A stretch of DNA of 64,000 nucleotides from Auanema rhodensis. Lineage: Eukaryota > Animalia > Nematoda. The stretch is from NCBI GenBank assembly GCA_964057225.1, contig OZ059896.1:20274001-20338000 (forward strand). The letters are read 5' to 3'. The notes below the pieces were generated by a model. It had not been told where the DNA came from, did not search any database, and saw nothing but the letters and a program-made list of their open reading frames with translations. A program made the translations under genes and the position numbers. The stretch's first letter is position 1, and every line of letters begins with the position of its first letter. Shown here in pieces: positions 346 to 60,700 of this stretch.

Positions 346-404
346 TGCATTTTTAAGCTAGCGCAAATCTGATAACACAGATCGACGCAGCTTAAAAATC
401 CGCA
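346..404. other. Monomer dyad 1: long hairpin, present in each monomer
   Basis: atttttaagct (349-359) pairs with agcttaaaaat (389-399), 11 bp perfect. Inside it gcg/cgc and atctg/cagat close a 6-nt loop 'ataaca'; tgc/gca lies outside. Confidence 0.9.
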
Positions 405-35700: not shown

Positions 35701-38700
35701 AAAGACGATGGACAATGTTATTCAACGAAAAAATTATTCCTTCAGGGTGAAAATCGAGGATATAAGTGTGAACTTATATCAGTTGATATCTCGGTGCATT
35801 TTTAAGCTAGCGCAAATCTGATAACAGAGATCGACGCAGCTTAAAAATCCGCATCGAATGCACTATACTACATTGAGAAACGCTTAATACAAAAATTAGT
35901 TATGATCGTTTGAAAAATGATGCATTAGTGTATGTTGAGTTTCCATGTACACTCAACATTGCTTCCAAAAACATTTTGACAAAAATTTTTTCGAAAAATT
36001 TCGAAATAATTTAGCAAAAAGTAGATGTTTTTAGATTCCTTTATTCAAGGCAAAGACGATGGACAATGTTATTCAACGAAAAAATTAATTCTTTAGGGTG
36101 AAAATCGAGGATATAAGTGTGAACTTATATCAGTTGATATCTTGGTGCATTTTTAAGCTAGCGCAAATCTGATAACACAGATCGACGCAGCTTAAAAATC
36201 CGCATCGAATGCACTATACTACATTGAGAAACGCTTAATACAAAAATTAGTTATGATCGTTTGAAAAATGATGCATTAGTGTATGTTGAGTTTCCATGTA
36301 CACTCAACATTGCTTCCAAAAACATTTTGACAAAAATTTTTTCGAAAAATTTCGAAATAATTTAGCAAAAAGTAGATGTTTTTAAATTCCTTTATTCAAG
36401 GCAAAGACGATGGACAATGTTATTCAACGAAAAAATTATTCCTTCAGGGTGAAAATCGAGGATATAAGTGTGAACTTATATCAGTTGATATCTCGGTGCA
36501 TTTTTAAGCTAGCGCAAATCTGATAACAGAGATCGACGCAGCTTAAAAATCCGCATCGAATGCACTATACTACATTGAGAAACGCTTAATACAAAAATTA
36601 GTTATGATCGTTTGAAAAATGATGCATTAGTGTATGTTGAGTTTCCATGTACACTCAACATTGCTTCCAAAAACATTTTGACAAAAATTTTTTCGAAAAA
36701 TTTCAAAATAATTTAGCAAAAAGTAGATGTTTTTAGATTCCATTTTTCAAGGCAAAGACGATGGACAGTGTTATTCAACGAAAAAATTAATTCTTCAGGG
36801 TGAAAATCGAGGATATAAGTGTGAACTTATATCAGTTGATATCTCGGTGCATTTTTAAGCTAGCGCAAATCTGATAACACAGATCGACGCAGCTTAAAAA
36901 TCCGCATTGAATGCACTATACTACATTGAGAAACGCTTAATACAAAAATTAGTTATGATCGTTTGAAAAATGATGCATTAGTGTATGTTGAGTTTCCATG
37001 TACACTCAACATTGCTTCCAAAAACATTTTGACAAAAATTTTTTCGAAAAATTTCGAAATAATTTAGCAAAAAGTAGATGTTTTTAGATTCCTTTATTCA
37101 AGGCAAAGACGATGAACAATGTTATTCAACGAAAAAATTAATTCTTTAGGGTGAAAATCGAGGATATAAGTGTGAACTTATATCAGTTGATATCTTGGTG
37201 CATTTTTAAGCTAGCGCAAATCTGATAACACAGATCGACGCAGCTTAAAAATCCGCATCGAATGCACTATACTACATTGAAAAACGCTTAATACAAAAAT
37301 TAGTTATGATCGTTTGAAAAATGATGCATTAGTGTATGTTGAGTTTCCATGTACACTCAACATTGCTTCCAAAAACATTTTGACAAAAATTTTTTCGAAA
37401 AATTTCAAAATAATTTAGCAAAAAGTAGATGTTTTTAGATTCCTTTTTTCAAGGCAAAGACGATGGACAATGTTATTCAACGAAAAAATTATTCCTTCAG
37501 GGTGAAAATCGAGGATATAAGTGTGAACTTATATCAGTTGATATCTCGGTGCATTTTTAAGCTAGCGCAAATCTGATAACAGAGATCGACGCAGCTTAAA
37601 AATCCGCATCGAATGCACTATACTACATTGAGAAACGCTTAATACAAAAATTAGTTATGATCGTTTGAAAAATGATGCATTAGTGTATGTTGAGTTTCCA
37701 TGTACACTCAACATTGCTTCCAAAAACATTTTGACAAAAATTTTTTCGAAAAATTTCGAAATAATTTAGCAAAAAGTAGATGTTTTTAGATTCCTTTATT
37801 CAAGGCAAAGACGATGGACAATGTTATTCAACGAAAAAATTAATTCTTTAGGGTGAAAATCGAGGATATAAGTGTGAACTTATATCAGTTGATATCTTGG
37901 TGCATTTTTAAGCTAGCGCAAATCTGATAACACAGATCGACGCAGCTTAAAAATCCGCAACGAATGCACTATACTACATTGAGAAACGCTTAATACAAAA
38001 ATTAGTTATGATCGTTTGAAAAATGATGCATTAGTGTATGTTGAGTTTCCATGTACACTCAACATTGCTTCCAAAAACATTTTGACAAAAATTTTTTCGA
38101 AAAATTTCGAAATAATTTAGCAAAAAGTAGATGTTTTTAAATTCCTTTATTCAAGGCAAAGACGATGGACAATGTTATTCAACGAAAAAATTAATTCTTT
38201 AGGGTGAAAATCGAGGATATAAGTGTGAACTTATATCAGTTGATATCTTGGTGCATTTTTAAGCTAGCGCAAATCTGATAACACAGATCGACGCAGCTTA
38301 AAAATCCGCATCGAATGCACTATACTACATTGAGAAACGCTTAATACAAAAATTAGTTATGATCGTTTGAAAAATGATGCATTAGTGTATGTTGAGTTTC
38401 CATGTACACTCAACATTGCTTCCAAAAACATTTTGACAAAAATTTTTTCGAAAAATTTCGAAATAATTTAGCAAAAAGTAGATGTTTTTAAATTCCTTTA
38501 TTCAAGGCAAAGACGATGGACAATGTTATTCAACGAAAAAATTATTCCTTCAGGGTGAAAATCGAGGATATAAGTGTGAACTTATATCAGTTGATATCTC
38601 GGTGCATTTTTAAGCTAGCGCAAATCTGATAACACAGATCGACGCAGCTTAAAAATCCGCATTGAATGCACTATACTACATTGAGAAACGCTTAATACAA

Positions 38701-38851
38701 AAATTAGTTATGATCGTTTGAAAAATGATGCATTAGTGTATGTTGAGTTTCCATGTACACTCAACATTGCTTCCAAAAACATTTTGACAAAAATTTTTTC
38801 GAAAAATTTCGAAATAATTTAGCAAAAAGTAGATGTTTTTAAATTCCTTTA

Positions 38852-40314
38852 TTCAAGGCAAAGACGATGGACAGTGTTATTCAACGAAAAAATTAATTCT
38901 TCAGGGTGAAAATCGAGGATATAAGTGTGAACTTATATCAGTTGATATCTCGGTGCATTTTTAAGCTAGCGCAAATCTGATAACACAGATCGACGCAGCT
39001 TAAAAATCCGCATTGAATGCACTATACTACATTGAGAAACGCTTAATACAAAAATTAGTTATGATCGTTTGAAAAATGATGCATTAGTGTATGTTGAGTT
39101 TCCATGTACACTCAACATTGCTTCCAAAGACATTTTGACAAAAATTTTTTCGAAAAATTTCGAAATAATTTAGCAAAAAGTAGATGTTTTTAGATTCCTT
39201 TATTCAAGGCAAAGACGATGGACAATGTTATTCAACGAAAAAATTAATTCTTTAGGGTGAAAATCGAGGATATAAGTGTAAACTTATATCAGTTGATATC
39301 TTGGTGCATTTTTAAGCTAGCGCAAATCTGATAACACAGATCGACGCAGCTTAAAAATCCGCATCGAATGCACTATACTACATTGAGAAACGCTTAATAC
39401 AAAAATTAGTTATGATCGTTTGAAAAATGATGCATTAGTGTATGTTGAGTTTCCATGTACACTCAACATTGCTTCCAAAAACATTTTGACAAAAATTTTT
39501 TCGAAAAATTTCAAAATAATTTAGCAAAAAGTAGATGTTTTTAGATTCCTTTTTTCAAGGCAAAGACGATGGACAATGTTATTCAACGAAAAAATTATTC
39601 CTTCAGGGTGAAAATCGAGGATATAAGTGTGAACTTATATCAGTTGATATCTCGGTGCATTTTTAAGCTAGCGCAAATCTGATAACAGAGATCGACGCAG
39701 CTTAAAAATCCGCATCGAATGCACTATACTACATTGAGAAACGCTTAATACAAAAATTAGTTATGATCGTTTGAAAAATGATGCATTAGTGTATGTTGAG
39801 TTTCCATGTACACTCAACATTGCTTCCAAAAACATTTTGACAAAAATTTTTTCGAAAAATTTCAAAATAATTTAGCAAAAAGTAGATGTTTTTAGATTCC
39901 ATTTTTCAAGGCAAAGACGATGGACAATGTTATTCAACGGAAAAATTATTTCTTCAGGGTGAAAATCGAGGATATAAGTGTGAACTTATATCAGTTGATA
40001 TCTCGGTGCATTTTTAAGCTAGCGCAAATCTGATAACACAGATCGACGCAGCTTAAAAATCCGCATCGAATGCACTATACTACATTGAGAAACGCTTAAT
40101 ACAAAAATTAGTTATGATCGTTTGAAAAATGATGCATTAGTGTATGTTGAGTTTCCATGTACACTCAACATTGCTTCCAAAAATTTTTTCGAAAAATTTC
40201 AAAATAATTTAGCAAAAAGTAGATGTTTTTAGATTCCATTTTTCAAAGCAAAGACGATGGACAGTGTTATTCAACGAAAAAATTAATTCTTCAGGGTGAA
40301 AATCGAGGATATAA
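38852..40314 (+). repeat. Left arm of a ~1.46-kb haplotype-matched inverted repeat (partner 43730-45192)
   Basis: Ordered rare variants ccaaaGac, gtgtAaac, attaTtCc, acaGag, caacgGaaaaattaTttc, 14-bp deletion, caaAgca; mirrored coordinates sum to 84044. Confidence 0.88.
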
Positions 40315-40330
40315 TTTAAAAACATCTACT
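40301..40330. other. Tail-to-tail orientation-switch (inversion) junction with 2-bp AA microhomology at 40313-40314
   Basis: 'aatcgaggatat-AA-tttaaaaacatctact': the forward monomer would continue 'ataagtgtg' and the reverse monomer would be preceded by 'ggaattt'. AA is shared and no bases are inserted. Confidence 0.96.
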
Positions 40331-43300
40331 TTTTGCTAAATTATTTCGAAATTTTTCGAAAAAATTTTTGTCAAAATGTTTTTGGAAGCAATGTTGAGTG
40401 TACATGGAAACTCAACATACACTAATGCATCATTTTTCAAACGATCATAACTAATTTTTGTATTAAGCGTTTCTCAATGTAGTATAGTGCATTCAATGCG
40501 GATTTTTAAGCTGCGTCGATCTGCGTTATCAGATTTGCGCTAGCTTAAAAATGCACTGAGATATCAACTGATATAAGTTCACACTTATATCCTCGATTTT
40601 CACCCTGAAGAATTAATTTTTTCGTTGAATAACACTGTCCATCGTCTTTGCTTTGAAAAATGGAATCTAAAAACATCTACTTTTTGCTAAATTATTTTGA
40701 AATTTTTCGAAAAAATTTTTGGAAGCAATGTTGAGTGTACATGGAAACTCAACATACACTAATGCATCATTTTTCAAACGATCATAACTAATTTTTGTAT
40801 TAAGCGTTTCTCAATGTAGTATAGTGCATTCGATGCGGATTTTTAAGCTGCGTCGATCTCTGTTATCAGATTTGCGCTAGCTTAAAAATGCACCGAGATA
40901 TCAACTGATATAAGTTCACACTTATATCCTCGATTTTCACCCTGAAGGAATAATTTTTTCGTTGAATAACATTGTCCATCGTCTTTGCCTTGAAAAAAGG
41001 AATCTAAAAACATCTACTTTTTGCTAAATTATTTTGAAATTTTTCGAAAAAATTTTTGTCAAAATGTTTTTGGAAGCAATGTTGAGTGTACATGGAAACT
41101 CAACATACACTAATGCATCATTTTTCAAACGATCATAACTAATTTTTGTATCAAGCGTTTCTCAATGTAGTATAGTGCATTCGATGCGGATTTTTAAGCT
41201 GCGTCGATCTGTGTTATCATATTTGCGCTAGCTTAAAAATGCACCGAGATATCAACTGATATAAGTTCACACTTATATCCTCGATTTTCACCCTGAAGAA
41301 TTAATTTTTTCGTTGAATAACATTGTCCATCGTCTTTGCCTTGAATAAAGGAATCTAAAAACATCTACTTTTTGCTAAATTATTTTGAAATTTTTCGAAA
41401 AAATTTTTGTCAAAATGTTTTTGGAAGCAATGTTGAGTGTACATGGAAACTCAACATACACTAATGCATCATTTTTCAAACGATCATAACTAATTTTTGT
41501 ATTAAGCGTTTTTCAATGTAGTATAGTGCATTCGATGCGGATTTTTAAGCTGCGTCGATCTGTGTTATCAGATTTGCGCTAGCTTAAAAATGCACCAAGA
41601 TATCAACTGATATAAGTTCACACTTATATCCTCGATTTTCACCCTAAAGAATTAATTTTTTCGTTGAATAACATTGTCCATCGTCTTTGCCTTGAATAAA
41701 GGAATCTAAAAACATCTACTTTTTGCTAAATTATTTCGAAATTTTTCGAAAAAATTTTTGTCAAAATGTTTTTGGAAGCAATGTTGAGTGTACATGGAAA
41801 CTCAACATACACTAATGCATCATTTTTCAAACGATCATAACTAATTTTTGTATTAAGCGTTTCTCAATGTAATATAGTGCATTCAATGCGGATTTTTAAG
41901 CTGCGTCGATCTGTGTTATCAGATTTGCGCTAGCTTAAAAATGCACCGAGATATCAACTGATATAAGTTCACACTTATATCCTCGATTTTCACCCTGAAG
42001 AATTAATTTTTTCGTTGAATAACACTGTCCATCGTCTTTGCCTTGAAAAATGGAATCTAAAAACATCTACTTTTTGCTAAATTATTTTGAAATTTTTCGA
42101 AAAAATTTTTGTCAAAATGTTTTTGGAAGCAATGTTGAGTGTACATGGAAACTCAACATACACTAATGCATCATTTTTCAAACGATCATAACTAATTTTT
42201 GTATTAAGCGTTTTTCAATGTAGTATAGTGCATTCGATGCGGATTTTTAAGCTGCGTCGATCTGTGTTATCAGATTTGCGCTAGCTTAAAAATGCACCAA
42301 GATATCAACTGATATAAGTTCACACTTATATCCTCGATTTTTACCCTAAAGAATTAATTTTTTCGTTGAATAACATTGTCCATCGTCTTTGCCTTGAAAA
42401 CTGGAATCTAAAAACATCTACTTTTTGCTAAATTATTTCGAAATTTTTCGAAAAAATTTTTGTCAAAATGTTTTTGGAAGCAATGTTGAGTGTACATGGA
42501 AACTCAACATACACTAATGCATCATTTTTCAAACGATCATAACTAATTTTTGTATTAAGCGTTTTTCAATGTAGTATAGTGCATTCGATGCGGATTTTTA
42601 AGCTGCGTCGATCTGTGTTATCAGATTTGCGCTAGCTTAAAAATGCACCAAGATATCAACTGATATAAGTTCACACTTATATCCTCGATTTTCACCCTAA
42701 AGAATTAATTTTTTCGTTGAATAACATTGTCCATCGTCTTTGCCTTGAATAAAGGAATCTAAAAACATCTACTTTTTGCTAAATTATTTTGAAATTTTTC
42801 GAAAAAATTTTTGTCAAAATGTTTTTGGAAGCAATGTTGAGTGTACATGGAAACTCAACATACACTAATGCATCATTTTTCAAACGATCATAACTAATTT
42901 TTGTATTAAGCGTTTTTCAATGTAGTATAGTGCATTCGATGCGGATTTTTAAGCTGCGTCGATCTGTGTTATCAGATTTGCGCTAGCTTAAAAATGCACC
43001 AAGATATCAACTGATATAAGTTCACACTTATATCCTCGATTTTCACCCTAAAGAATTAATTTTTTCGTTGAATAACATTGTCCATCGTCTTTGCCTTGAA
43101 AACTGGAATCTAAAAACATCTACTTTTTGCTAAATTATTTCGAAATTTTTCGAAAAAATTTTTGTCAAAATGTTTTTGGAAGCAATGTTGAGTGTACATG
43201 GAAACTCAACATACACTAATGCATCATTTTTCAAACGATCATAACTAATTTTTGTATTAAGCGTTTTTCAATGTAGTATAGTGCATTCGATGCGGATTTT

Positions 43301-43729
43301 TAAGCTGCGTCGATCTGTGTTATCAGATTTGCGCTAGCTTAAAAATGCACCAAGATATCAACTGATATAAGTTCACACTTATATCCTCGATTTTCACCCT
43401 AAAGAATTAATTTTTTCGTTGAATAACATTGTCCATCGTCTTTGCCTTGAATAAAGGAATTTAAAAACATCTAAATTTTGCTAAATTATTCCGAAATTTT
43501 TCGAAAAAATTTTTGTCAAAATGTTTTTGGAAGCAATGTTGAGTGTACATGGAAACTCAACATACACTAATGCATCATTTTTCAAACGATCATAACTAAT
43601 TTTTGTATTAAGCGTTTCTCAATGTAGTATAGTGCATTCAATGCGGATTTTTAAGCTGCGTCGATCTGCGTTATCAGATTTGCGCTAGCTTAAAAATGCA
43701 CCGAGATATCAACTGATATAAGTTCACAC

Positions 43730-45192
43730 TTATATCCTCGATTTTCACCCTGAAGAATTAATTTTTTCGTTGAATAACACTGTCCATCGTCTTTGCTTTG
43801 AAAAATGGAATCTAAAAACATCTACTTTTTGCTAAATTATTTTGAAATTTTTCGAAAAAATTTTTGGAAGCAATGTTGAGTGTACATGGAAACTCAACAT
43901 ACACTAATGCATCATTTTTCAAACGATCATAACTAATTTTTGTATTAAGCGTTTCTCAATGTAGTATAGTGCATTCGATGCGGATTTTTAAGCTGCGTCG
44001 ATCTGTGTTATCAGATTTGCGCTAGCTTAAAAATGCACCGAGATATCAACTGATATAAGTTCACACTTATATCCTCGATTTTCACCCTGAAGAAATAATT
44101 TTTCCGTTGAATAACATTGTCCATCGTCTTTGCCTTGAAAAATGGAATCTAAAAACATCTACTTTTTGCTAAATTATTTTGAAATTTTTCGAAAAAAGTT
44201 TTGTCAAAATGTTTTTGGAAGCAATGTTGAGTGTACATGGAAACTCAACATACACTAATGCATCATTTTTCAAACGATCATAACTAATTTTTGTATTAAG
44301 CGTTTCTCAATGTAGTATAGTGCATTCGATGCGGATTTTTAAGCTGCGTCGATCTCTGTTATCAGATTTGCGCTAGCTTAAAAATGCACCGAGATATCAA
44401 CTGATATAAGTTCACACTTATATCCTCGATTTTCACCCTGAAGGAATAATTTTTTCGTTGAATAACATTGTCCATCGTCTTTGCCTTGAAAAAAGGAATC
44501 TAAAAACATCTACTTTTTGCTAAATTATTTTGAAATTTTTCGAAAAAATTTTTGTCAAAATGTTTTTGGAAGCAATGTTGAGTGTACATGGAAACTCAAC
44601 ATACACTAATGCATCATTTTTCAAACGATCATAACTAATTTTTGTATTAAGCGTTTCTCAATGTAGTATAGTGCATTCGATGCGGATTTTTAAGCTGCGT
44701 CGATCTGTGTTATCAGATTTGCGCTAGCTTAAAAATGCACCAAGATATCAACTGATATAAGTTTACACTTATATCCTCGATTTTCACCCTAAAGAATTAA
44801 TTTTTTCGTTGAATAACATTGTCCATCGTCTTTGCCTTGAATAAAGGAATCTAAAAACATCTACTTTTTGCTAAATTATTTCGAAATTTTTCGAAAAAAT
44901 TTTTGTCAAAATGTCTTTGGAAGCAATGTTGAGTGTACATGGAAACTCAACATACACTAATGCATCATTTTTCAAACGATCATAACTAATTTTTGTATTA
45001 AGCGTTTCTCAATGTAGTATAGTGCATTCAATGCGGATTTTTAAGCTGCGTCGATCTGTGTTATCAGATTTGCGCTAGCTTAAAAATGCACCGAGATATC
45101 AACTGATATAAGTTCACACTTATATCCTCGATTTTCACCCTGAAGAATTAATTTTTTCGTTGAATAACACTGTCCATCGTCTTTGCCTTGAA
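43730..45192 (-). repeat. Right arm of the ~1.46-kb haplotype-matched inverted repeat
   Basis: Same variants in reverse order; only one mismatch noticed (g at 44198). Confidence 0.88.
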
Positions 45193-48100
45193 AAATGGAA
45201 TCTAAAAACATCTACTTTTTGCTAAATTATTTTGAAATTTTTCGAAAAAATTTTTGTCAAAATGTTTTTGGAAGCAATGTTGAGTGTACATGGAAACTCA
45301 ACATACACTAATGCATCATTTTTCAAACGATCATAACTAATTTTTGTATTAAGCGTTTTTCAATGTAGTATAGTGCATTCGATGCGGATTTTTAAGCTGC
45401 GTCGATCTGTGTTATCAGATTTGCGCTAGCTTAAAAATGCACCAAGATATCAACTGATATAAGTTCACACTTATATCCTCGATTTTCACCCTAAAGAATT
45501 AATTTTTTCGTTGAATAACATTGTCCATCGTCTTTGCCTTGAATAAAGGAATTTAAAAACATCTACTTTTTGCTAAATTATTTCGAAATTTTTCGAAAAA
45601 ATTTTTGTCAAAATGTTTTTGGAAGCAATGTTGAGTGTACATGGAAACTCAACATACACTAATGCATCATTTTTCAAACGATCATAACTAATTTTTGTAT
45701 TAAGCGTTTCTCAATGTAGTATAGTGCATTCGATGCGGATTTTTAAGCTGCGTCGATCTGTGTTATCAGATTTGCGCTAGCTTAAAAATGCACCAAGATA
45801 TCAACTGATATAAGTTCACACTTATATCCTCGATTTTCACCCTAAAGAATTAATTTTTTCGTTGAATAACATTGTCCATCGTCTTTGCCTTGAATAAAGG
45901 AATTTAAAAACATCTACTTTTTGCTAAATTATTTCGAAATTTTTCGAAAAAATTTTTGTCAAAATGTTTTTGGAAGCAATGTTGAGTGTACATGGAAACT
46001 CAACATACACTAATGCATCATTTTTCAAACGATCATAACTAATTTTTGTATTAAGCGTTTCTCAATGTAGTATAGTGCATTCGATGCGGATTTTTAAGCT
46101 GCGTCGATCTGTGTTATCAGATTTGCGCTAGCTTAAAAATGCACCAAGATATCAACTGATATAAGTTCACACTTATATCCTCGATTTTCACCCTAAAGAA
46201 TTAATTTTTTCGTTGAATAACATTGTCCATCGTCTTTGCCTTGAATAAAGGAATCTAAAAACATCTACTTTTTGCTAAATTATTTCGAAATTTTTCGAAA
46301 AAATTTTTGTCAAAATGTTTTTGGAAGCAATGTTGAGTGTACATGGAAACTCAACATACACTAATGCATCATTTTTCAAACGATCATAACTAATTTTTGT
46401 ATTAAGCGTTTCTCAATGTAGTATAGTGCATTCGATGCGGATTTTTAAGCTGCGTCGATCTCTGTTATCAGATTTGCGCTAGCTTAAAAATGCACCGAGA
46501 TATCAACTGATATAAGTTCACACTTATATCCTCGATTTTCACCCTGAAGGAATAATTTTTTCGTTGAATAACATTGTCCATCGTCTTTGCCTTGAAAAAA
46601 GGAATCTAAAAACATCTACTTTTTGCTAAATTATTTTGAAATTTTTCGAAAAAATTTTTGTCAAAATGTTTTTGGAAGCAATGTTGAGTGTACATGGAAA
46701 CTCAACATACACTAATGCATCATTTTTCAAACGATCATAACTAATTTTTGTATTAAGCGTTTTTCAATGTAGTATAGTGCATTTGATGCGGATTTTTAAG
46801 CTGCGTCGATCTGTGTTATCAGATTTGCGCTAGCTTAAAAATGCACCAAGATATCAACTGATATAAGTTCACACTTATATCCTCGATTTTCACCCTAAAG
46901 AATTAATTTTTTCGTTGAATAACATTGTCCATCGTCTTTGCCTTGAATAAAGGAATTTAAAAACATCTACTTTTTGCTAAATTATTTCGAAATTTTTCGA
47001 AAAAATTTTTGTCAAAATGTTTTTGGAAGCAATGTTGAGTGTACATGGAAACTCAACATACACTAATGCATCATTTTTCAAACGATCATAACTAATTTTT
47101 GTATTAAGCGTTTCTCAATGTAGTATAGTGCATTCGATGCGGATTTTTAAGCTGCGTCGATCTGTGTTATCAGATTTGCGCTAGCTTAAAAATGCACCAA
47201 GATATCAACTGATATAAGTTCACACTTATATCCTCGATTTTCACCCTAAAGAATTAATTTTTTCGTTGAATAACATTGTCCATCGTCTTTGCCTTGAATA
47301 AAGGAATTTAAAAACATCTACTTTTTGCTAAATTATTTCGAAATTTTTCGAAAAAATTTTTGTCAAAATGTTTTTGGAAGCAATGTTGAGTGTACATGGA
47401 AACTCAACATACACTAATGCATCATTTTTCAAACGATCATAACTAATTTTTGTATTAAGCGTTTCTCAATGTAGTATAGTGCATTCGATGCGGATTTTTA
47501 AGCTGCGTCGATCTGTGTTATCAGATTTGCGCTAGCTTAAAAATGCACCAAGATATCAACTGATATAAGTTCACACTTATATCCTCGATTTTCACCCTAA
47601 AGAATTAATTTTTTCGTTGAATAACATTGTCCATCGTCTTTGCCTTGAATAAAGGAATCTAAAAACATCTACTTTTTGCTAAATTATTTCGAAATTTTTC
47701 GAAAAAATTTTTGTCAAAATGTTTTTGGAAGCAATGTTGAGTGTACATGGAAACTCAACATACACTAATGCATCATTTTTCAAACGATCATAACTAATTT
47801 TTGTATTAAGCGTTTCTCAATGTAGTATAGTGCATTCGATGCGGATTTTTAAGCTGCGTCGATCTCTGTTATCAGATTTGCGCTAGCTTAAAAATGCACC
47901 GAGATATCAACTGATATAAGTTCACACTTATATCCTCGATTTTCACCCTGAAGGAATAATTTTTTCGTTGAATAACATTGTCCATCGTCTTTGCCTTGAA
48001 AAAAGGAATCTAAAAACATCTACTTTTTGCTAAATTATTTTGAAATTTTTCGAAAAAATTTTTGTCAAAATGTTTTTGGAAGCAATGTTGAGTGTACATG

Positions 48101-48999: not shown

Positions 49000-51900
49000 C
49001 CTAAAGAATTAATTTTTTCGTTGAATAACATTGTCCATCGTCTTTGCCTTGAATAAAGGAATCTAAAAACATCTACTTTTTGCTAAATTATTTCGAAATT
49101 TTTCGAAAAAATTTTTGTCAAAATGTTTTTGGAAGCAATGTTGAGTGTACATGGAAACTCAACATACACTAATGCATCATTTTTCAAACGATCATAACTA
49201 ATTTTTGTATTAAGCGTTTCTCAATGTAGTATAGTGCATTCAATGCGGATTTTTAAGCTGCGTCGATCTGTGTTATCAGATTTGCGCTAGCTTAAAAATG
49301 CACCGAGATATCAACTGATATAAGTTCACACTTATATCCTCGATTTTCACCCTGAAGAATTAATTTTTTCGTTGAATAACACTGTCCATCGTCTTTGCCT
49401 TGAAAAATGGAATCTAAAAACATCTACTTTTTGCTAAATTATTTTGAAATTTTTCGAAAAAATTTTTGTCAAAATGTTTTTGGAAGCAATGTTGAGTGTA
49501 CATGGAAACTCAACATACACTAATGCATCATTTTTCAAACGATCATAACTAATTTTTGTATTAAGCGTTTCTCAATGTAGTATAGTGCATTCGATGCGGA
49601 TTTTTAAGCTGCGTCGATCTGTGTTATCAGATTTGCGCTAGCTTAAAAATGCACCAAGATATCAACTGATATAAGTTCACACTTATATCCTCGATTTTCA
49701 CCCTGAAGAATTAATTTTTTCGTTGAATAACACTGTCCATCGTCTTTGCCTTGAAAAATGGAATCTAAAAACATCTACTTTTTGCTAAATTATTTTGAAA
49801 TTTTTCGAAAAAATTTTTGTCAAAATGTTTTTGGAAGCAATGTTGAGTGTACATGGAAACTCAACATACACTAATGCATCATTTTTCAAACGATCATAAC
49901 TAATTTTTGTATTAAGCGTTTTTCAATGTAGTATAGTGCATTCGATGCGGATTTTTAAGCTGCGTCGATCTGTGTTATCAGATTTGCGCTAGCTTAAAAA
50001 TGCACCAAGATATCAACTGATATAAGTTCACACTTATATCCTCGATTTTCACCCTAAAGAATTAATTTTTTCGTTGAATAACATTGTCCATCGTCTTTGC
50101 CTTGAAAACTGGAATCTAAAAACATCTACTTTTTGCTAAATTATTTCGAAATTTTTCGAAAAAATTTTTGTCAAAATGTTTTTGGAAGCAATGTTGAGTG
50201 TACATGGAAACTCAACATACACTAATGCATCATTTTTCAAACGATCATAACTAATTTTTGTATTAAGCGTTTTTCAATGTAGTATAGTGCATTCGATGCG
50301 GATTTTTAAGCTGCGTCGATCTGTGTTATCAGATTTGCGCTAGCTTAAAAATGCACCAAGATATCAACTGATATAAGTTCACACTTATATCCTCGATTTT
50401 CACCCTAAAGAATTAATTTTTTCGTTGAATAACATTGTCCATCGTCTTTGCCTTGAATAAAGGAATCTAAAAACATCTACTTTTTGCTAAATTATTTCGA
50501 AATTTTTCGAAAAAATTTTTGTCAAAATGTTTTTGGAAGCAATGTTGAGTGTACATGGAAACTCAACATACACTAATGCATCATTTTTCAAACGATCATA
50601 ACTAATTTTTGTATTAAGCGTTTCTCAATGTAGTATAGTGCATTCAATGCGGATTTTTAAGCTGCGTCGATCTGTGTTATCAGATTTGCGCTAGCTTAAA
50701 AATGCACCGAGATATCAACTGATATAAGTTCACACTTATATCCTCGATTTTCACCCTGAAGAATTAATTTTTTCGTTGAATAACACTGTCCATCGTCTTT
50801 GCCTTGAAAAATGGAATCTAAAAACATCTACTTTTTGCTAAATTATTTTGAAATTTTTCGAAAAAATTTTTGTCAAAATGTTTTTGGAAGCAATGTTGAG
50901 TGTACATGGAAACTCAACATACACTAATGCATCATTTTTCAAACGATCATAACTAATTTTTGTATTAAGCGTTTCTCAATGTAGTATAGTGCATTCGATG
51001 CGGATTTTTAAGCTGCGTCGATCTGTGTTATCAGATTTGCGCTAGCTTAAAAATGCACCAAGATATCAACTGATATAAGTTCACACTTATATCCTCGATT
51101 TTCACCCTGAAGAATTAATTTTTTCGTTGAATAACACTGTCCATCGTCTTTGCCTTGAAAAATGGAATCTAAAAACATCTACTTTTTGCTAAATTATTTT
51201 GAAATTTTTCGAAAAAATTTTTGTCAAAATGTTTTTGGAAGCAATGTTGAGTGTACATGGAAACTCAACATACACTAATGCATCATTTTTCAAACGATCA
51301 TAACTAATTTTTGTATTAAGCGTTTTTCAATGTAGTATAGTGCATTCGATGCGGATTTTTAAGCTGCGTCGATCTGTGTTATCAGATTTGCGCTAGCTTA
51401 AAAATGCACCAAGATATCAACTGATATAAGTTCACACTTATATCCTCGATTTTCACCCTAAAGAATTAATTTTTTCGTTGAATAACATTGTCCATCGTCT
51501 TTGCCTTGAAAACTGGAATCTAAAAACATCTACTTTTTGCTAAATTATTTCGAAATTTTTCGAAAAAATTTTTGTCAAAATGTTTTTGGAAGCAATGTTG
51601 AGTGTACATGGAAACTCAACATACACTAATGCATCATTTTTCAAACGATCATAACTAATTTTTGTATTAAGCGTTTTTCAATGTAGTATAGTGCATTCGA
51701 TGCGGATTTTTAAGCTGCGTCGATCTGTGTTATCAGATTTGCGCTAGCTTAAAAATGCACCAAGATATCAACTGATATAAGTTCACACTTATATCCTCGA
51801 TTTTCACCCTAAAGAATTAATTTTTTCGTTGAATAACATTGTCCATCGTCTTTGCCTTGAATAAAGGAATTTAAAAACATCTACTTTTTGCTAAATTATT

Positions 51901-54900
51901 TCGAAATTTTTCGAAAAAATTTTTGTCAAAATGTTTTTGGAAGCAATGTTGAGTGTACATGGAAACTCAACATACACTAATGCATCATTTTTCAAACGAT
52001 CATAACTAATTTTTGTATTAAGCGTTTTTCAATGTAGTATAGTGCATTCGATGCGGATTTTTAAGCTGCGTCGATCTGTGTTATCAGATTTGCGCTAGCT
52101 TAAAAATGCACCAAGATATCAACTGATATAAGTTCACACTTATATCCTCGATTTTCACCCTAAAGAATTAATTTTTTCGTTGAATAACATTGTCCATCGT
52201 CTTTGCCTTGAATAAAGGAATCTAAAAACATCTACTTTTTGCTAAATTATTTCGAAATTTTTCGAAAAAATTTTTGTCAAAATGTTTTTGGAAGCAATGT
52301 TGAGTGTACATGGAAACTCAACATACACTAATGCATCATTTTTCAAACGATCATAACTAATTTTTGTATTAAGCGTTTCTCAATGTAGTATAGTGCATTC
52401 AATGCGGATTTTTAAGCTGCGTCGATCTGTGTTATCAGATTTGCGCTAGCTTAAAAATGCACCGAGATATCAACTGATATAAGTTCACACTTATATCCTC
52501 GATTTTCACCCTGAAGAATTAATTTTTTCGTTGAATAACACTGTCCATCGTCTTTGCCTTGAAAAATGGAATCTAAAAACATCTACTTTTTGCTAAATTA
52601 TTTTGAAATTTTTCGAAAAAATTTTTGTCAAAATGTTTTTGGAAGCAATGTTGAGTGTACATGGAAACTCAACATACACTAATGCATCATTTTTCAAACG
52701 ATCATAACTAATTTTTGTATTAAGCGTTTCTCAATGTAGTATAGTGCATTCGATGCGGATTTTTAAGCTGCGTCGATCTGTGTTATCAGATTTGCGCTAG
52801 CTTAAAAATGCACCAAGATATCAACTGATATAAGTTCACACTTATATCCTCGATTTTCACCCTGAAGAATTAATTTTTTCGTTGAATAACACTGTCCATC
52901 GTCTTTGCCTTGAAAAATGGAATCTAAAAACATCTACTTTTTGCTAAATTATTTTGAAATTTTTCGAAAAAATTTTTGTCAAAATGTTTTTGGAAGCAAT
53001 GTTGAGTGTACATGGAAACTCAACATACACTAATGCATCATTTTTCAAACGATCATAACTAATTTTTGTATTAAGCGTTTTTCAATGTAGTATAGTGCAT
53101 TCGATGCGGATTTTTAAGCTGCGTCGATCTGTGTTATCAGATTTGCGCTAGCTTAAAAATGCACCAAGATATCAACTGATATAAGTTCACACTTATATCC
53201 TCGATTTTCACCCTAAAGAATTAATTTTTTCGTTGAATAACATTGTCCATCGTCTTTGCCTTGAAAACTGGAATCTAAAAACATCTACTTTTTGCTAAAT
53301 TATTTCGAAATTTTTCGAAAAAATTTTTGTCAAAATGTTTTTGGAAGCAATGTTGAGTGTACATGGAAACTCAACATACACTAATGCATCATTTTTCAAA
53401 CGATCATAACTAATTTTTGTATTAAGCGTTTTTCAATGTAGTATAGTGCATTCGATGCGGATTTTTGAGCTGCGTCGATCTGTGTTATCAGATTTGCGCT
53501 AGCTTAAAAATGCACCAAGATATCAACTGATATAAGTTCACACTTATATCCTCGATTTTCACCCTAAAGAATTAATTTTTTCGTTGAATAACATTGTCCA
53601 TCGTCTTTGCCTTGAATAAAGGAATCTAAAAACATCTACTTTTTGCTAAATTATTTCGAAATTTTTCGAAAAAATTTTTGTCAAAATGTTTTTGGAAGCA
53701 ATGTTGAGTGTACATGGAAACTCAACATACACTAATGCATCATTTTTCAAACGATCATAACTAATTTTTGTATTAAGCGTTTCTCAATGTAGTATAGTGC
53801 ATTCAATGCGGATTTTTAAGCTGCGTCGATCTGTGTTATCAGATTTGCGCTAGCTTAAAAATGCACCGAGATATCAACTGATATAAGTTCACACTTATAT
53901 CCTCGATTTTCACCCTGAAGAATTAATTTTTTCGTTGAATAACACTGTCCATCGTCTTTGCCTTGAAAAATGGAATCTAAAAACATCTACTTTTTGCTAA
54001 ATTATTTTGAAATTTTTCGAAAAAATTTTTGTCAAAATGTTTTTGGAAGCAATGTTGAGTGTACATGGAAACTCAACATACACTAATGCATCATTTTTCA
54101 AACGATCATAACTAATTTTTGTATTAAGCGTTTCTCAATGTAGTATAGTGCATTCGATGCGGATTTTTAAGCTGCGTCGATCTGTGTTATCAGATTTGCG
54201 CTAGCTTAAAAATGCACCAAGATATCAACTGATATAAGTTCACACTTATATCCTCGATTTTCACCCTGAAGAATTAATTTTTTCGTTGAATAACACTGTC
54301 CATCGTCTTTGCCTTGAAAAATGGAATCTAAAAACATCTACTTTTTGCTAAATTATTTTGAAATTTTTCGAAAAAATTTTTGTCAAAATGTTTTTGGAAG
54401 CAATGTTGAGTGTACATGGAAACTCAACATACACTAATGCATCATTTTTCAAACGATCATAACTAATTTTTGTATTAAGCGTTTTTCAATGTAGTATAGT
54501 GCATTCGATGCGGATTTTTAAGCTGCGTCGATCTGTGTTATCAGATTTGCGCTAGCTTAAAAATGCACCAAGATATCAACTGATATAAGTTCACACTTAT
54601 ATCCTCGATTTTCACCCTAAAGAATTAATTTTTTCGTTGAATAACATTGTCCATCGTCTTTGCCTTGAAAACTGGAATCTAAAAACATCTACTTTTTGCT
54701 AAATTATTTCGAAATTTTTCGAAAAAATTTTTGTCAAAATGTTTTTGGAAGCAATGTTGAGTGTACATGGAAACTCAACATACACTAATGCATCATTTTT
54801 CAAACGATCATAACTAATTTTTGTATTAAGCGTTTTTCAATGTAGTATAGTGCATTCGATGCGGATTTTTAAGCTGCGTCGATCTGTGTTATCAGATTTG

Positions 54901-55000
54901 CGCTAGCTTAAAAATGCACCAAGATATCAACTGATATAAGTTCACACTTATATCCTCGATTTTCACCCTAAAGAATTAATTTTTTCGTTGAATAACATTG
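49000..55000 (-). repeat. 4-mer/9-mer higher-order duplication marked by 'gaaaaCtgg'; boundaries approximate
   Basis: Variant at 50109, 51513, 53268, 54672; spacings 1404, 1755, 1404; pairs offset by 3159 = 9x351. Confidence 0.78.
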
Positions 55001-57706
55001 TCCATCGTCTTTGCCTTGAATAAAGGAATTTAAAAACATCTACTTTTTGCTAAATTATTTCGAAATTTTTCGAAAAAATTTTTGTCAAAATGTTTTTGGA
55101 AGCAATGTTGAGTGTACATGGAAACTCAACATACACTAATGCATCATTTTTCAAACGATCATAACTAATTTTTGTATTAAGCGTTTCTCAATGTAGTATA
55201 GTGCATTCAATGCGGATTTTTAAGCTGCGTCGATCTGCGTTATCAGATTTGCGCTAGCTTAAAAATGCACCGAGATATCAACTGATATAAGTTCACACTT
55301 ATATCCTCGATTTTCACCCTGAAGAATTAATTTTTTCGTTGAATAACACTGTCCATCGTCTTTGCTTTGAAAAATGGAATCTAAAAACATCTACTTTTTG
55401 CTAAATTATTTTGAAATTTTTCGAAAAAATTTTTGTCAAAATGTTTTTGGAAGCAATGTTGAGTGTACATGGAAACTCAACATACACTAATGCATCATTT
55501 TTCAAACGATCATAACTAATTTTTGTATTAAGCGTTTTTCAATGTAGTATAGTGCATTCGATGCGGATTTTTAAGCTGCGTCGATCTGTGTTATCAGATT
55601 TGCGCTAGCTTAAAAATGCACCAAGATATCAACTGATATAAGTTCACACTTATATCCTCGATTTTCACCCTAAAGAATTAATTTTTTCGTTGAATAACAT
55701 TGTCCATCGTCTTTGCCTTGAATAAAGGAATTTAAAAACATCTACTTTTTGCTAAATTATTTCGAAATTTTTCGAAAAAATTTTTGTCAAAATGTTTTTG
55801 GAAGCAATGTTGAGTGTACATGGAAACTCAACATACACTAATGCATCATTTTTCAAACGATCATAACTAATTTTTGTATTAAGCGTTTCTCAATGTAGTA
55901 TAGTGCATTCGATGCGGATTTTTAAGCTGCGTCGATCTGTGTTATCAGATTTGCGCTAGCTTAAAAATGCACCAAGATATCAACTGATATAAGTTCACAC
56001 TTATATCCTCGATTTTCACCCTAAAGAATTAATTTTTTCGTTGAATAACATTGTCCATCGTCTTTGCCTTGAATAAAGGAATCTAAAAACATCTACTTTT
56101 TGCTAAATTATTTCGAAATTTTTCGAAAAAATTTTTGTCAAAATGTTTTTGGAAGCAATGTTGAGTGTACATGGAAACTCAACATACACTAATGCATCAT
56201 TTTTCAAACGATCATAACTAATTTTTGTATTAAGCGTTTCTCAATGTAGTATAGTGCATTCGATGCGGATTTTTAAGCTGCGTCGATCTCTGTTATCAGA
56301 TTTGCGCTAGCTTAAAAATGCACCGAGATATCAACTGATATAAGTTCACACTTATATCCTCGATTTTCACCCTGAAGGAATAATTTTTTCGTTGAATAAC
56401 ATTGTCCATCGTCTTTGCCTTGAAAAAAGGAATCTAAAAACATCTACTTTTTGCTAAATTATTTTGAAATTTTTCGAAAAAATTTTTGTCAAAATGTTTT
56501 TGGAAGCAATGTTGAGTGTACATGGAAACTCAACATACACTAATGCATCATTTTTCAAACGATCATAACTAATTTTTGTATTAAGCGTTTTTCAATGTAG
56601 TATAGTGCATTCGATGCGGATTTTTAAGCTGCGTCGATCTGTGTTATCAGATTTGCGCTAGCTTAAAAATGCACCAAGATATCAACTGATATAAGTTCAC
56701 ACTTATATCCTCGATTTTCACCCTAAAGAATTAATTTTTTCGTTGAATAACATTGTCCATCGTCTTTGCCTTAAAAACTGGAATCTAAAAACATCTACTT
56801 TTTGCTAAATTATTTCGAAATTTTTCGAAAAAATTTTTGTCAAAATGTTTTTGGAAGCAATGTTGAGTGTACATGGAAACTCAACATACACTAATGCATC
56901 ATTTTTCAAACGATCATAACTAATTTTTGTATTAAGCGTTTTTCAATGTAGTATAGTGCATTCGATGCGGATTTTTAAGCTGCGTCGATCTGTGTTATCA
57001 GATTTGCGCTAGCTTAAAAATGCACCAAGATATCAACTGATATAAGTTCACACTTATATCCTCGATTTTCACCCTAAAGAATCAATTTTTTCGTTGAATA
57101 ACATTGTCCATCGTCTTTGCCTTGAATAAAGGAATTTAAAAACATCTACTTTTTGCTAAATTATTTCGAAATTTTTCGAAAAAATTTTTGTCAAAATGTT
57201 TTTGGAAGCAATGTTGAGTGTACATGGAAACTCAACATACACTAATGCATCATTTTTCAAACGATCATAACTAATTTTTGTATTAAGCGTTTCTCAATGT
57301 AGTATAGTGCATTCAATGAGGATTTTTAAGCTGCGTCGATCTGCGTTATCAGATTTGCGCTAGCTTAAAAATGCACCGAGATATCAACTGATATAAGTTC
57401 ACACTTATATCCTCGATTTTCACCCTGAAGAATTAATTTTTTCGTTGAATAACACTGTCCATCGTCTTTGCTTTGAAAAATGGAATCTAAAAACATCTAC
57501 TTTTTGCTAAATTATTTTGAAATTTTTCGAAAAAATTTTTGGAAGCAATGTTGAGTGTACATGGAAACTCAACATACACTAATGCATCATTTTTCAAACG
57601 ATCATAACTAATTTTTGTATTAAGCGTTTCTCAATGTAGTATAGTGCATTCGATGCGGATTTTTAAGCTGCGTCGATCTGTGTTATCAGATTTGCGCTAG
57701 CTTAAA

Positions 57707-60700
57707 AATGCACCGAGATATCAACTGATATAAGTTTACACTTATATCCTCGATTTTCACCCTGAAGAAATAATTTTTCCGTTGAATAACATTGTCCATC
57801 GTCTTTGCCTTGAAAAATGGAATCTAAAAACATCTACTTTTTGCTAAATTATTTTGAAATTTTTCGAAAAAATTTTTGTCAAAATGTTTTTGGAAGCAAT
57901 GTTGAGTGTACATGGAAACTCAACATACACTAATGCATCATTTTTCAAACGATCATAACTAATTTTTGTATTAAGCGTTTCTCAATGTAGTATGGTGCAT
58001 TCGATGCGGATTTTTAAGCTGCGTCGATCTCTGTTATCAGATTTGCGCTAGCTTAAAAATGCACCGAGATATCAACTGATATAAGTTCACACTTATATCC
58101 TCGATTTTCACCCTGAAGGAATAATTTTTTCGTTGAATAACATTGTCCATCGTCTTTGCCTTGAAAAAAGGAATCTAAAAACATCTACTTTTTGCTAAAT
58201 TATTTTGAAATTTTTCGAAAAAATTTTTGTCAAAATGTTTTTGGAAGCAATGTTGAGTGTACATGGAAACTCAACATACACTAATGCATCATTTTTCAAA
58301 CGATCATAACTAATTTTTGTATTAAGCGTTTCTCAATGTAGTATAGTGCATTCGATGCGGATTTTTAAGCTGCGTCGATCTGTGTTATCAGATTTGCGCT
58401 AGCTTAAAAATGCACCAAGATATCAACTGATATAAGTTTACACTTATATCCTCGATTTTCACCCTAAAGAATTAATTTTTTCGTTGAATAACATTGTCCA
58501 TCGTCTTTGCCTTGAATAAAGGAATCTAAAAACATCTACTTTTTGCTAAATTATTTCGAAATTTTTCGAAAAAATTTTTGTCAAAATGTCTTTGGAAGCA
58601 ATGTTGAGTGTACATGGAAACTCAACATACACTAATGCATCATTTTTCAAACGATCATAACTAATTTTTGTATTAAGCGTTTTTCAATGTAGTATAGTGC
58701 ATTCGATGCGGATTTTTAAGCTGCGTCGATCTGTGTTATCAGATTTGCGCTAGCTTAAAAATGCACCGAGATATCAACTGATATAAGTTTACACTTATAT
58801 CCTCGATTTTCACCCTGAAGAAATAATTTTTCCGTTGAATAACATTGTCCATCGTCTTTGCCTTGAAAAATGGAATCTAAAAACATCTACTTTTTGCTAA
58901 ATTATTTTGAAATTTTTCGAAAAAATTTTTGTCAAAATGTTTTTGGAAGCAATGTTGAGTGTACATGGAAACTCAACATACACTAATGCATCATTTTTCA
59001 AACGATCATAACTAATTTTTGTATTAAGCGTTTCTCAATGTAGTATAGTGCATTCGATGCGGATTTTTAAGCTGCGTCGATCTCTGTTATCAGATTTGCG
59101 CTAGATTAAAAATGCACCGAGATATCAACTGATATAAGTTCACACTTATATCCTCGATTTTCACCCTGAAGGAATAATTTTTTCGTTGAATAACATTGTC
59201 CATCGTCTTTGCCTTGAAAAAAGGAATCTAAAAACATCTACTTTTTGCTAAATTATTTTGAAATTTTTCGAAAAAATTTTTGTCAAAATGTTTTTGGAAG
59301 CAATGTTGAGTGTACATGGAAACTCAACATACACTAATGCATCATTTTTCAAACGATCATAACTAATTTTTGTATTAAGCGTTTCTCAATGTAGTATAGT
59401 GCATTCGATGCGGATTTTTAAGCTGCGTCGATCTGTGTTATCAGATTTGCGCTAGCTTAAAAATGCACCAAGATATCAACTGATATAAGTTTACACTTAT
59501 ATCCTCGATTTTCACCCTAAAGAATTAATTTTTTCGTTGAATAACATTGTCCATCGTCTTTGCCTTGAATAAAGGAATCTAAAAACATCTACTTTTTGCT
59601 AAATTATTTCGAAATTTTTCGAAAAAATTTTTGTCAAAATGTCTTTGGAAGCAATGTTGAGTGTACATGGAAACTCAACATACACTAATGCATCATTTTT
59701 CAAACGATCATAACTAATTTTTGTATTAAGCGTTTTTCAATGTAGTATAGTGCATTCGATGCGGATTTTTAAGCTGCGTCGATCTGTGTTATCAGATTTG
59801 CGCTAGCTTAAAAATGCACCGAGATATCAACTGATATAAGTTTACACTTATATCCTCGATTTTCACCCTGAAGAAATAATTTTTCCGTTGAATAACATTG
59901 TCCATCGTCTTTGCCTTGAAAAATGGAATCTAAAAACATCTACTTTTTGCTAAATTATTTTGAAATTTTTCGAAAAAATTTTTGTCAAAATGTTTTTGGA
60001 AGCAATGTTGAGTGTACATGGAAACTCAACATACACTAATGCATCATTTTTCAAACGATCATAACTAATTTTTGTATTAAGCGTTTCTCAATGTAGTATA
60101 GTGCATTCGATGCGGATTTTTAAGCTGCGTCGATCTCTGTTATCAGATTTGCGCTAGCTTAAAAATGCACCGAGATATCAACTGATATAAGTTCACACTT
60201 ATATCCTCGATTTTCACCCTGAAGGAATAATTTTTTCGTTGAATAACATTGTCCATCGTCTTTGCCTTGAAAAAAGGAATCTAAAAACATCTACTTTTTG
60301 CTAAATTATTTTGAAATTTTTCGAAAAAATTTTTGTCAAAATGTTTTTGGAAGCAATGTTGAGTGTACATGGAAACTCAACATACACTAATGCATCATTT
60401 TTCAAACGATCATAACTAATTTTTGTATTAAGCGTTTCTCAATGTAGTATAGTGCATTCGATGCGGATTTTTAAGCTGCGTCGATCTGTGTTATCAGATT
60501 TGCGCTAGCTTAAAAATGCACCAAGATATCAACTGATATAAGTTTACACTTATATCCTCGATTTTCACCCTAAAGAATTAATTTTTTCGTTGAATAACAT
60601 TGTCCATCGTCTTTGCCTTGAATAAAGGAATCTAAAAACATCTACTTTTTGCTAAATTATTTCGAAATTTTTCGAAAAAATTTTTGTCAAAATGTCTTTG

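Follow-up and report, generated by a model that had tools for sequence, protein, structure and literature searches.

A satellite orientation switch in Auanema rhodensis as the probable scar of a fold-back-type inverted duplication

Rearrangements that join neighbouring sequences head to head, with homology at the breakpoint short or absent, are known from tumours as fold-back inversions and breakage-fusion-bridge (BFB) signatures, and from fission and budding yeast as U-turn template exchange at inverted repeats. Such joins are thought to arise when a 3' end primes on a strand of the same polarity. In human constitutional fold-back duplications, the spacers range from 766 to 70,466 bp with a median of 3,428 bp, and 2 bp is the commonest length of microhomology (Hermetz et al. 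2014, PMC3907307). Satellite DNA is affected as well, and a report on human alpha-satellite arrays describes inversions and inverted duplications that are polymorphic and tolerated (10.64898/2025.12.09.693231). Joins of this shape also form in vitro, since more than 85% of MDA chimeras are inverted joins, with priming on 2-21 nt (Lasken and Stockwell 2007, PMC1855051).

The window analysed here, a 64000-bp stretch of A. rhodensis DNA, consists of a single 351-bp satellite that runs in the + and then in the - orientation. TRF reported the 351-bp repeat at 1-40314 and, in reverse complement, at 40313-64000; both the GC skew and the AT skew reverse their sign at the switch. The monomers were cut out by anchor-based splitting. 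The + block (1-40314, + strand), as defined by TRF, anchor spacing and the monomer table, holds 115 monomers, numbered P001-P115; the - block (40315-64000, - strand), as defined by TRF and the skew reversal, holds 68, numbered M001-M068, and continues past the end of the window. According to the monomer table the order of monomers is not the same in the two blocks. Since simple mirroring of the - block does not yield the + order, a read error that flips orientation was rejected as an explanation. The satellite array is non-coding: no ORF of at least 90 aa was present in the window, no Rfam family was found in 38800-45300, and there is no coding or RNA content at the junction. Four 20-25-mers of the monomer had no match in the literature searched.

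The original prediction placed the switch at a join between position 316 of a monomer type called D and the inverted position 237 of a type called E, with two shared bases. This join is present between 40314 and 40315 (40313-40316) with zero inserted bases, and the AA at 40313-40314 is compatible with both source monomers as 2-bp microhomology. When joins of this AT-rich repeat were simulated, 21% had microhomology of at least 2 bp (P=0.21). The shared AA is without statistical weight in such a repeat and uninformative on mechanism, and was discarded as evidence for one. A 22-mer that spans the junction occurs once, in a count that covers the window only.

The monomers on both sides of the join are also as had been described. 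P115 (40013-40314, + strand) is a D monomer truncated to positions 1-316 and the sole D among the 115 + monomers. It carries the 14-bp deletion, which removes consensus positions 166-179 at 40177/40178 and has a CAAAAA direct repeat on its flanks, together with 249A ('caaAgca'). Across the junction lies M001 (40315-40549, - strand), a truncated and undeleted E monomer (26G, 55T, 234A) that comprises positions 1-235, or 237 when the microhomology is included. It is adjoined by M002 (40550-40886, - strand), a reverse D monomer with the P115-type deletion and 249A as well as a private 344A. M002 is a hybrid in which 27G, as found in '.G'/P114-type monomers, is combined with a D body. D accounts for 5 of the 68 - monomers and for none of the 114 other + monomers, and its copies differ from one another at 0-1 sites. 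D adjoins E at three more sites in the - block, the dimers 43344-44031, 57019-57706 and 61568-62255, as had been noted; an additional dimer at 54913-55614 contains an undeleted 249A monomer. The D monomers that flank the junction had been expected to cluster. By variant-sharing and distance tables, P115 groups with M011, M050 and M063 first and then with M002, being identical to these three other D copies and different from M002 at position 27.

The break in D falls within a dyad. In an intact monomer this dyad has a 9-bp stem and a 4-nt loop (39971-39992, + strand; consensus positions about 309-330), as located by DNA folding and motif positions. The junction cuts into its 5' arm, of which 7 of 9 bases are left, and the cut arm remains within GGATATAA at 40307-40314. 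Since local hairpins cover about a quarter of the monomer by a rough count, the position of the dyad at the D breakpoint is only suggestive.

Inverted matches between the two blocks were found by exact diagonal scans. The mirror named in the original prediction, with its left arm at 40040-40314 (+ strand) and its right arm at 40585-40859 (- strand), shows 0 mismatches in 275 bp around a spacer of 270 bp (40315-40584) and ends at the mismatch 40039/40860. The + and - blocks share 143 exact inverted matches of at least 500 bp, the longest being 1094 bp, and an exact 275-bp mirror is unremarkable, that is, not beyond chance in this window. With exact inverted matches of up to 1094 bp so common, the perfection of the 275-bp mirror was rejected as a sign of recency. 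Along this adjacent axis the differences per monomer are 1 in D and then 6, 4, 3 and 6, which equals background past D.

A different axis, through the D monomer M011, gives a mirror that extends over several monomers. Its inner left arm (38852-40314, + strand) runs from the 3' end of P111 through P115 and its inner right arm (43730-45192, - strand) from position 316 of M011 through the 3' end of M015. The two differ by 1 mismatch in 1463 bp, located at 39846/44198 on the axis p+q=84044. The spacer (40315-43729, - strand) is 3,415 bp long and comprises M001-M010 and the last 35 bp of M011; it is itself satellite, and "single copy" only in a positional sense. Outside the inner arms is a 307-bp patch (38545-38851, + strand; partner 45193-45499) with 10 mismatches on the mirror axis. 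Its + side carries + block haplotypes, with P110 identical to P073, P100 and P104, and from its sequence the patch looks like a conversion or crossover tract. It is followed by a possible outer left arm (37116-38544, + strand; partner 45500-46928) with 2 mismatches in 1429 bp, beyond which divergence is again at background, about 8 per monomer. This outer arm carries less weight because 46904-48187 matches it equally well; its monomers are of common types, and it has about equally good matches at two other sites of the - block.

The differences per monomer along the M011 axis are 0, 1, 0, 0, then 6, 4, 1, 0, 1. The axis gives both the best 4-monomer mirror (sum 1) among 7168 placements in the window and the best 9-monomer mirror (sum 13) among 6313. 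In addition, the mirror terminates exactly at the junction, and such a score occurs at 1 of the ~110 possible end points. Since other 1.1-1.4 kb mirrors with at most 1 mismatch exist, which join distant parts of the blocks, near-identity alone is no proof of direct descent.

These two mirrors correspond to two possible loop sizes. Taken together, a fold-back of either loop size is the probable origin of the switch; we tentatively favor the version with a loop of 3.4 kb, in which a fold-back-type inverted duplication within the satellite left the switch as its scar. The original prediction preferred a loop of ~270 nt: a strand reading D (M002) and then E (M001) would have stopped at E237 and used position 316 of its own D as the priming site. 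We regard this as the closest alternative, although a doubtful one. It would account automatically for D on both sides of the junction when D makes up so few of the - monomers, and it comes with a perfect mirror around a 270-bp spacer. M002 looks like a crossover hybrid, which implies an exchange at that very place, and past D the mirror would have been destroyed by unequal crossovers or conversions that affected the - arm later. M011-M015 would then be a paralogue of the lost partner, for which an older 9-monomer duplication is a possible source, as suggested by the weak similarity of M001-M009 to M010-M018 (summed differences of 33 against about 57 expected). The prediction of this loop rests, however, on 275 bp of one D, which M011, M050 and M063 match as well or better. 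The return to background past D remains when a one-monomer deletion is allowed (differences of 2, 7 and 5), at least two further rearrangements are required, and the best mirror match of the window would have to be a paralogue by coincidence. The mismatch of P115 with M002 at position 27 likewise counts against the short loop.

The lineage of the last + monomers was compared with that of the two blocks. The inner left arm carries variants that are otherwise private to the - block, namely 170G/321A, 279G, the deletion and 249A. In the + block, P112, P114 and P115 are the sole monomers with variants enriched in the - block (the deletion of 166-179, 249A, 279G and 321A), and eight private + variants, each in at least four + monomers, have 0 occurrences in the - block. 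P112 and P113 have identical twins solely in the - block, which is true of only 3 of the 114 full-length + monomers. The + block ends in a D monomer together with two other types otherwise seen only in the - block, and this combination is a non-random feature of the junction. Since the last four + monomers have variants found elsewhere only in the - block, the inverted duplication abuts the switch. With an inverted duplication beside the switch, fold-back or template switching fits better than a plain two-break inversion, in agreement with the original prediction that the switch is not a random inversion. The original proposal of a fold-back or template-switch origin is upheld as far as the inverted duplication flanking the junction is concerned; as to which of the two processes named was at work, BFB and template switching are inseparable on the sequence of this window.

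A balanced two-break inversion would have turned a segment of at least 23.7 kb in a formerly uniform array, with its left break 1.4 kb inside a D-E domain. The unit that contains D-E recurs in the - block (M014-M010, M053-M049 and M064-M062), making a leftover + copy conceivable, and large inversions are described in human centromere satellite arrays (10.64898/2025.12.09.693231). Such an inversion would nevertheless have to break in a D monomer, at a frequency of 3-7%, and to do so at most 1.4 kb from the domain edge; the window's best mirror would also have to stop at the junction, as it does for about 1 in 110 end points. Moreover, the duplicated arms adjoin the junction. A reciprocal second junction would lie outside the window. 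We consider this the least likely of the explanations, and very improbable.

Large palindromes undergo conversion between their arms. An older orientation switch could likewise have had its + side overwritten up to the junction with sequence from M011-M015, and perhaps as far as M019, through gene conversion between the arms or through break-induced copying. The near-identical tract ends at the homology edge, which is the junction, and in register inside P111. The two blocks otherwise hold distinct private variants, and short tracts of exchange do occur, as seen in the 307-bp patch. On the other hand, this explanation adds an event and leaves the junction itself unexplained, it needs the same coincidence of D beside E as the 3.4-kb loop, and its tract of at least 1.2 kb, and possibly 3.2 kb, is long. 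It is quite unlikely in our estimate, if slightly less so than the inversion.

The switch could also be an artefact of the library or the assembly, either a chimeric molecule or an erroneous connection made where the satellite tangles the assembly graph. Chimeras that form by strand displacement or by polymerase template switching are inverted, span short intervening distances and have a few complementary bases. MDA chimeras have the same geometry, with over 85% inverted joins, intervening deletions and 2-21 nt of complementarity (PMC1855051). The transition from the - to the + lineage in P111 is in register, as in a false overlap of satellite. All 17 sequencing runs found consist of short contigs; over 40013-40860, the contigs of four runs (three organism labels, three studies), 60-90 nt long, were examined. 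They showed very high satellite depth, and none of the contigs listed bridges 40314/40315. The depth at the junction pools millions of satellite copies, and dips in it are uninterpretable because the identical arms split the placement of contigs. The shorter arm of a fold-back read should be identical throughout, but here the 307-bp patch and one point mismatch interrupt it, and the arms fall to background after at most 3.2 kb. The types of P112-P115 are absent elsewhere in the + block, and the assembly path consequently needs real + oriented reads that contain them. Singleton chimeras are, besides, seldom kept by assemblers. An artefact is unlikely on balance, a little less so than conversion.

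We propose that, in the 3.4-kb fold-back, a 3' end from either a resected break or a nascent strand at a stalled fork lay at E237 in M001 and may have annealed by two bases to a D monomer (position 315-316) on the same-polarity strand. Extension of this end would have made a reverse copy of that D and of the monomers beyond it, giving the + run P115, P114, P113 and P112, which probably continued to about P107. The likeliest template is the D at M011, in the complete D-E dimer M011-M010 (43344-44031, - strand), the likely source copy of P115; this gives a loop of 3,415 nt, against 270 nt for the D of the adjacent M002. A later in-register exchange with + satellite could then have produced the 307-bp patch and the background divergence beyond about 37116, erasing the mirror farther out. 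The clean junction, single in the window and free of filler, supports this proposal. Against it, with M011 as template, a departing D combined with a landing on a D beside E is a coincidence of roughly 0.1. The arms can be traced for 1.5-3.2 kb only, and the far ends of both blocks lie beyond the window, within which the + side shows only an in-register transition at about 38852 (or about 37116) and no return or healing junction.

How this locus compares with the systems described above can now be specified. Like tumour and yeast fold-backs, it is a head-to-head join of nearby sequence with little homology, but there was no long inverted repeat at the join beforehand, just the 9-bp dyad at the D breakpoint. 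With human fold-backs it shares inverted and non-inverted copies around a short spacer; their joins have a few bases of inverted microhomology (PMC3907307), beside which stand the 2 bp here, a length expected often by chance. The 3,415-bp spacer of the preferred geometry stands beside their median of 3,428 bp, whereas the alternative of 270 bp is shorter than their reported range of 766-70,466 bp (PMC3907307). The human events are, however, megabase duplications beside terminal deletions in unique DNA (PMC3907307), while the junction here lies wholly inside a tandem repeat, with no terminal deletion or telomere healing visible in the window. Human alpha-satellite is alike in having polarity switches and inverted duplications in otherwise homogeneous arrays; as described in that report, these are on a scale of hundreds of kilobases and belong to another satellite, monomer length and organism (10.64898/2025.12.09.693231). 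MDA chimeras resemble the locus in their inverted join, short intervening distance and short priming complementarity, but they are single molecules made in vitro, and the sequence here is an assembled consensus whose arms have diverged in the 307-bp patch (PMC1855051).

The class of event, fold-back inverted duplication, is already known, and the switch is a single well-described example of it. To our knowledge, polarity switches in satellites are seldom resolved to the base because their flanks are usually homogenised. The duplicated arm can be traced here because both blocks carry private variants, and this makes a fold-back separable from a balanced inversion; the junction region also shows later in-register exchange eroding the palindrome. 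It is a speculative idea, which we hold to be rather unlikely, that fold-back or U-turn switching, perhaps favored by short dyads within the monomers, is a recurrent mutational mode of the satellites of this genome that repeatedly makes polarity switches and kilobase palindromes. If it were, later amplification could turn these into higher-order repeats of mixed orientation, they could serve as sources of hairpin RNA or as fragile cruciform sites, and the junction would be a young, nearly unmodified example for measuring how often such events happen and which loop length they prefer. Should reads bear out the junction, and should other switches in this genome share its anatomy, they would offer a small natural data set on the loop length, microhomology and decay of fold-backs in heterochromatin.

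Tandem Repeats Finder detected one 351-bp repeat over the whole window, with a satellite block on the + strand at 1–40314 (114.9 copies, 98% matches) and its reverse-complement block on the − strand at 40313–64000 (67.7 copies, 97%). The GC content was flat throughout at ~31%, and the signs of both the GC skew and the AT skew reversed at 40 kb. The array was split with a 25-nt anchor into 115 + monomers (P001–P115) and 68 − monomers (M001–M068), pairs of which diverge on average at ~6 of 351 sites (1.7%). Anchor spacings in the + block were 351 bp in 112 cases and 350 bp in two; P074 (25624–25973) and P090 (31239–31588) are each 350 bp through single-base deletions, and no other of the 114 complete + monomers varies in length. 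The − block holds five monomers of 337 bp. Local higher-order periodicities were seen at 352–4914 (three monomers, P002–P014), 49297–54912 (four monomers, M027–M042, where lag 4 gave the minimum mean distance) and 57707–60865 (three monomers, M051–M059). No ORF of at least 90 aa was present in the whole window and no Rfam family was found near the junction; the array is plain non-coding satellite.

The orientation of the satellite flips at 40314|40315. The last + monomer, P115 (40013–40314), is of the D type: it lacks consensus positions 166–179, carries 249A and ends at position 316. It is followed on the − strand by M001 (40315–40549), an undeleted E-type monomer (26G, 55T, 234A) that runs from position 235 back to 1, and by M002 (40550–40886), a reverse-oriented D monomer. 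Every junction element listed in the original prediction was found in the window. The join has a 2-bp microhomology, with AA at 40313–40314 matching both D 315–316 and inverted E 237–236, and contains no filler bases. The segment 40040–40314 is the exact reverse complement of 40585–40859 (275 bp, no mismatches), with a 270-bp spacer and an outer limit set by the mismatch at 40039/40860. A 22-mer spanning the junction occurs once within the window. The predicted further D–E dimers are likewise present (M011/M010, M050/M049 and M063/M062). M044/M043 is an additional dimer whose 249A monomer is without the deletion, and a 249A monomer precedes E in all five cases.

The 14-bp deletion that defines D (40171–40184 in P115; also in M002, M011, M050, M063 and M067) is flanked in P115 by two CAAAAA direct repeats. 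The change is from CCAAAAA-CATTTTGACAAAAA-TTTTTT to CCAAAAATTTTTT, and its exact position is ambiguous inside the direct repeat. Deletion between short direct repeats is a classic footprint of replication slippage, and the CAAAAA repeats suggest such an origin here. M044 (55264–55614), with 249A and an E monomer next to it, may represent the pre-deletion state of D. M067 (63309–63645) carries the deletion but has none of 240A, 249A and 266G, and the monomer after it is of the '.G' type instead of E; its pattern resembles that of a recombinant or of a monomer that acquired the deletion through conversion.

Taken alone, an exact mirror of 275 bp is unremarkable here: the two blocks share 143 exact inverted matches of at least 500 bp, the longest being 1094 bp. 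Microhomology of at least 2 bp was also found in 21% of simulated random joins of the repeat with its own reverse complement. The non-random signal is monomer lineage. Eight variants are private to the + block, each in four or five + monomers and none in the − block. Four of the six variants enriched in the − block occur exactly once each in the + block, namely 321A in P112, 279G in P114, and the deletion and 249A in P115. P112 also has 170G, elsewhere seen in − block monomers only, and identical twins of P112 and P113 exist in the − block only, which is true of 3 of the 114 full-length + monomers. These variants and twins therefore place the lineage boundary ~1.4 kb left of the orientation boundary, and an inverted copy of − block sequence adjoins the switch.

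We examined which − block copy is mirrored. P115 shows no difference from M011, M050 or M063 over all 302 aligned positions but differs at position 27 from the adjacent M002, a hybrid that combines 27G, as in '.G' and P114-type monomers, with a D body and has 344A as a private variant. The original prediction placed the mirror axis between P115 and M002, with a loop of ~270 nt. This axis fitted less well than one through M011: the differences per monomer were 1, 6, 4, 3, 6 and 10, which is background immediately past D, and were 2, 7 and 5 when M002 was taken as a one-monomer deletion hybrid. When P115 was paired with M011 and onward, they were 0, 1, 0, 0, 6, 4, 1, 0, 1 and 3, then background. 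On this axis there is one mismatch (39846/44198) at 0–1462 nt from the junction (38852–40314 and 43730–45192), ten in a contiguous 307-bp patch at 1463–1769 nt (38545–38851 and 45193–45499) and two at 1770–3198 nt (37116–38544 and 45500–46928). Beyond 3198 nt (left of 37116, right of 46928), there are ~8 mismatches per monomer, as in the background. No inverted match in the window with at most one mismatch is longer than the 1463-bp stretch; the four-monomer mirror on the M011 axis (sum 1) was top of 7168 placements and the nine-monomer mirror (sum 13) top of 6313. Only 1463 bp are secure as the arm, because other mirrors of 1.1–1.4 kb exist elsewhere in the window and the outer segment (37116–38544), composed of common monomer types, is matched about equally by two other places in the − block; 3.2 kb is the probable extent. 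On its + side the 307-bp patch has + block haplotypes, P110 matching P073, P100 and P104 exactly. Both the patch and the outer loss of the mirror are in register and resemble the outcome of subsequent conversion by, or unequal exchange with, + oriented satellite.

The best-scoring mirror terminates exactly at the junction. A balanced two-break inversion would leave this ending to chance, and would also require that the DNA broke inside a monomer of a rare type and no more than 1.4 kb from the D–E domain's edge; we consider it very improbable. An older junction with arm-to-arm conversion afterwards is consistent with the tract boundaries but leaves the junction itself unexplained, and is quite unlikely.

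In a fold-back, a 3′ end reading E...TT would pair with the AA at D 315–316 of a same-polarity strand and be extended from there, which would yield both the join of D316 to inverted E237 and an inverted copy of the monomers behind a D. The partner may have been the 3′ end's own strand, folded back once resected, or the opposing template at a replication fork. As to the trigger, the sequence does not discriminate between a replication U-turn and a break with subsequent breakage-fusion-bridge. Since the arms match on the M011 axis, we tentatively favor M011 as the template, with a loop of 3,415 nt (M001–M010 and the last 35 nt of M011). M002 as the template, with a 270-nt loop, is a more doubtful possibility; it fits the presence of a D beside the landing E, a coincidence that costs a factor of ~0.1 under M011. 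M001–M009 and M010–M018 (40315–46488) show 33 summed differences versus ~57 expected (3, 2, 7, 4, 3, 0, 6, 3 and 5 by pair, ~6.4 expected for each). This suggests an older nine-monomer segmental duplication next to the junction, by which a second D–E dimer would have come to stand beside it. In sequenced human fold-back duplications, spacers span 766–70,466 bp (median 3,428 bp) and the microhomology is most often 2 bp long (PMC3907307); the 3.4-kb spacer proposed here would be typical of them.

Every monomer carries a hairpin (9-bp stem, 4-nt loop), and the D breakpoint interrupts its 5′ arm; this predicted hairpin could be a polymerase stall site. As about one quarter of the monomer is in local hairpins by a rough count, the position is only suggestive. 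Three local dyads were seen per monomer, at positions 1–45, ~133–158 and ~309–330 (for example 39662–39706 and 39971–39992): a long one at the monomer start, TTTAAGCT...AGCTTAAA, and further ones, ATGTTGAGT...ACTCAACAT and GATATAAGT-GTGA-ACTTATATC. Folding of the D–E dimer as single-stranded DNA gave a z-score of −5.1.

Seventeen public sequencing runs were found under six organism labels, all stored as contigs, and four runs from three labels and three studies were placed on 40013–40860. The satellite was present at very high word depth in all four. With no fewer than three labels and three studies represented, the satellite is abundant and common to related taxa or strains. Contigs of three runs showed a joint that 'goes back' with the same 11 inserted letters at 40165–40230 and its mirror 40318–40397, two runs being placed on one arm and one on the mirror arm; this indicates a longer monomer variant (internal duplication of ~66 bp plus 11 nt) elsewhere in the genomes of these runs and absent from the window. 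Among the contigs listed, which leave more than 75,000 further pieces, none bridges 40314/40315; the pieces are 60–90 nt and the identical arms compete for them. The placements speak neither for nor against the junction. Strand-displacement chimeras, more than 85% of which are inverted and which prime on 2–21 nt, share exactly its geometry (PMC1855051). An artefact is nevertheless unlikely: a divergent patch interrupts the arms, and no other part of the + block contains P112–P115 types from which a false overlap could have drawn them.

Fold-back inverted duplications and polarity switches within satellite arrays are already established, and large inversions and inverted duplications are among the features described for human alpha-satellite arrays (10.64898/2025.12.09.693231). 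Its duplicated arms in inverted orientation, the short spacer between them and the clean join give the locus, as known from the assembled sequence, the anatomy of a fold-back inverted duplication.
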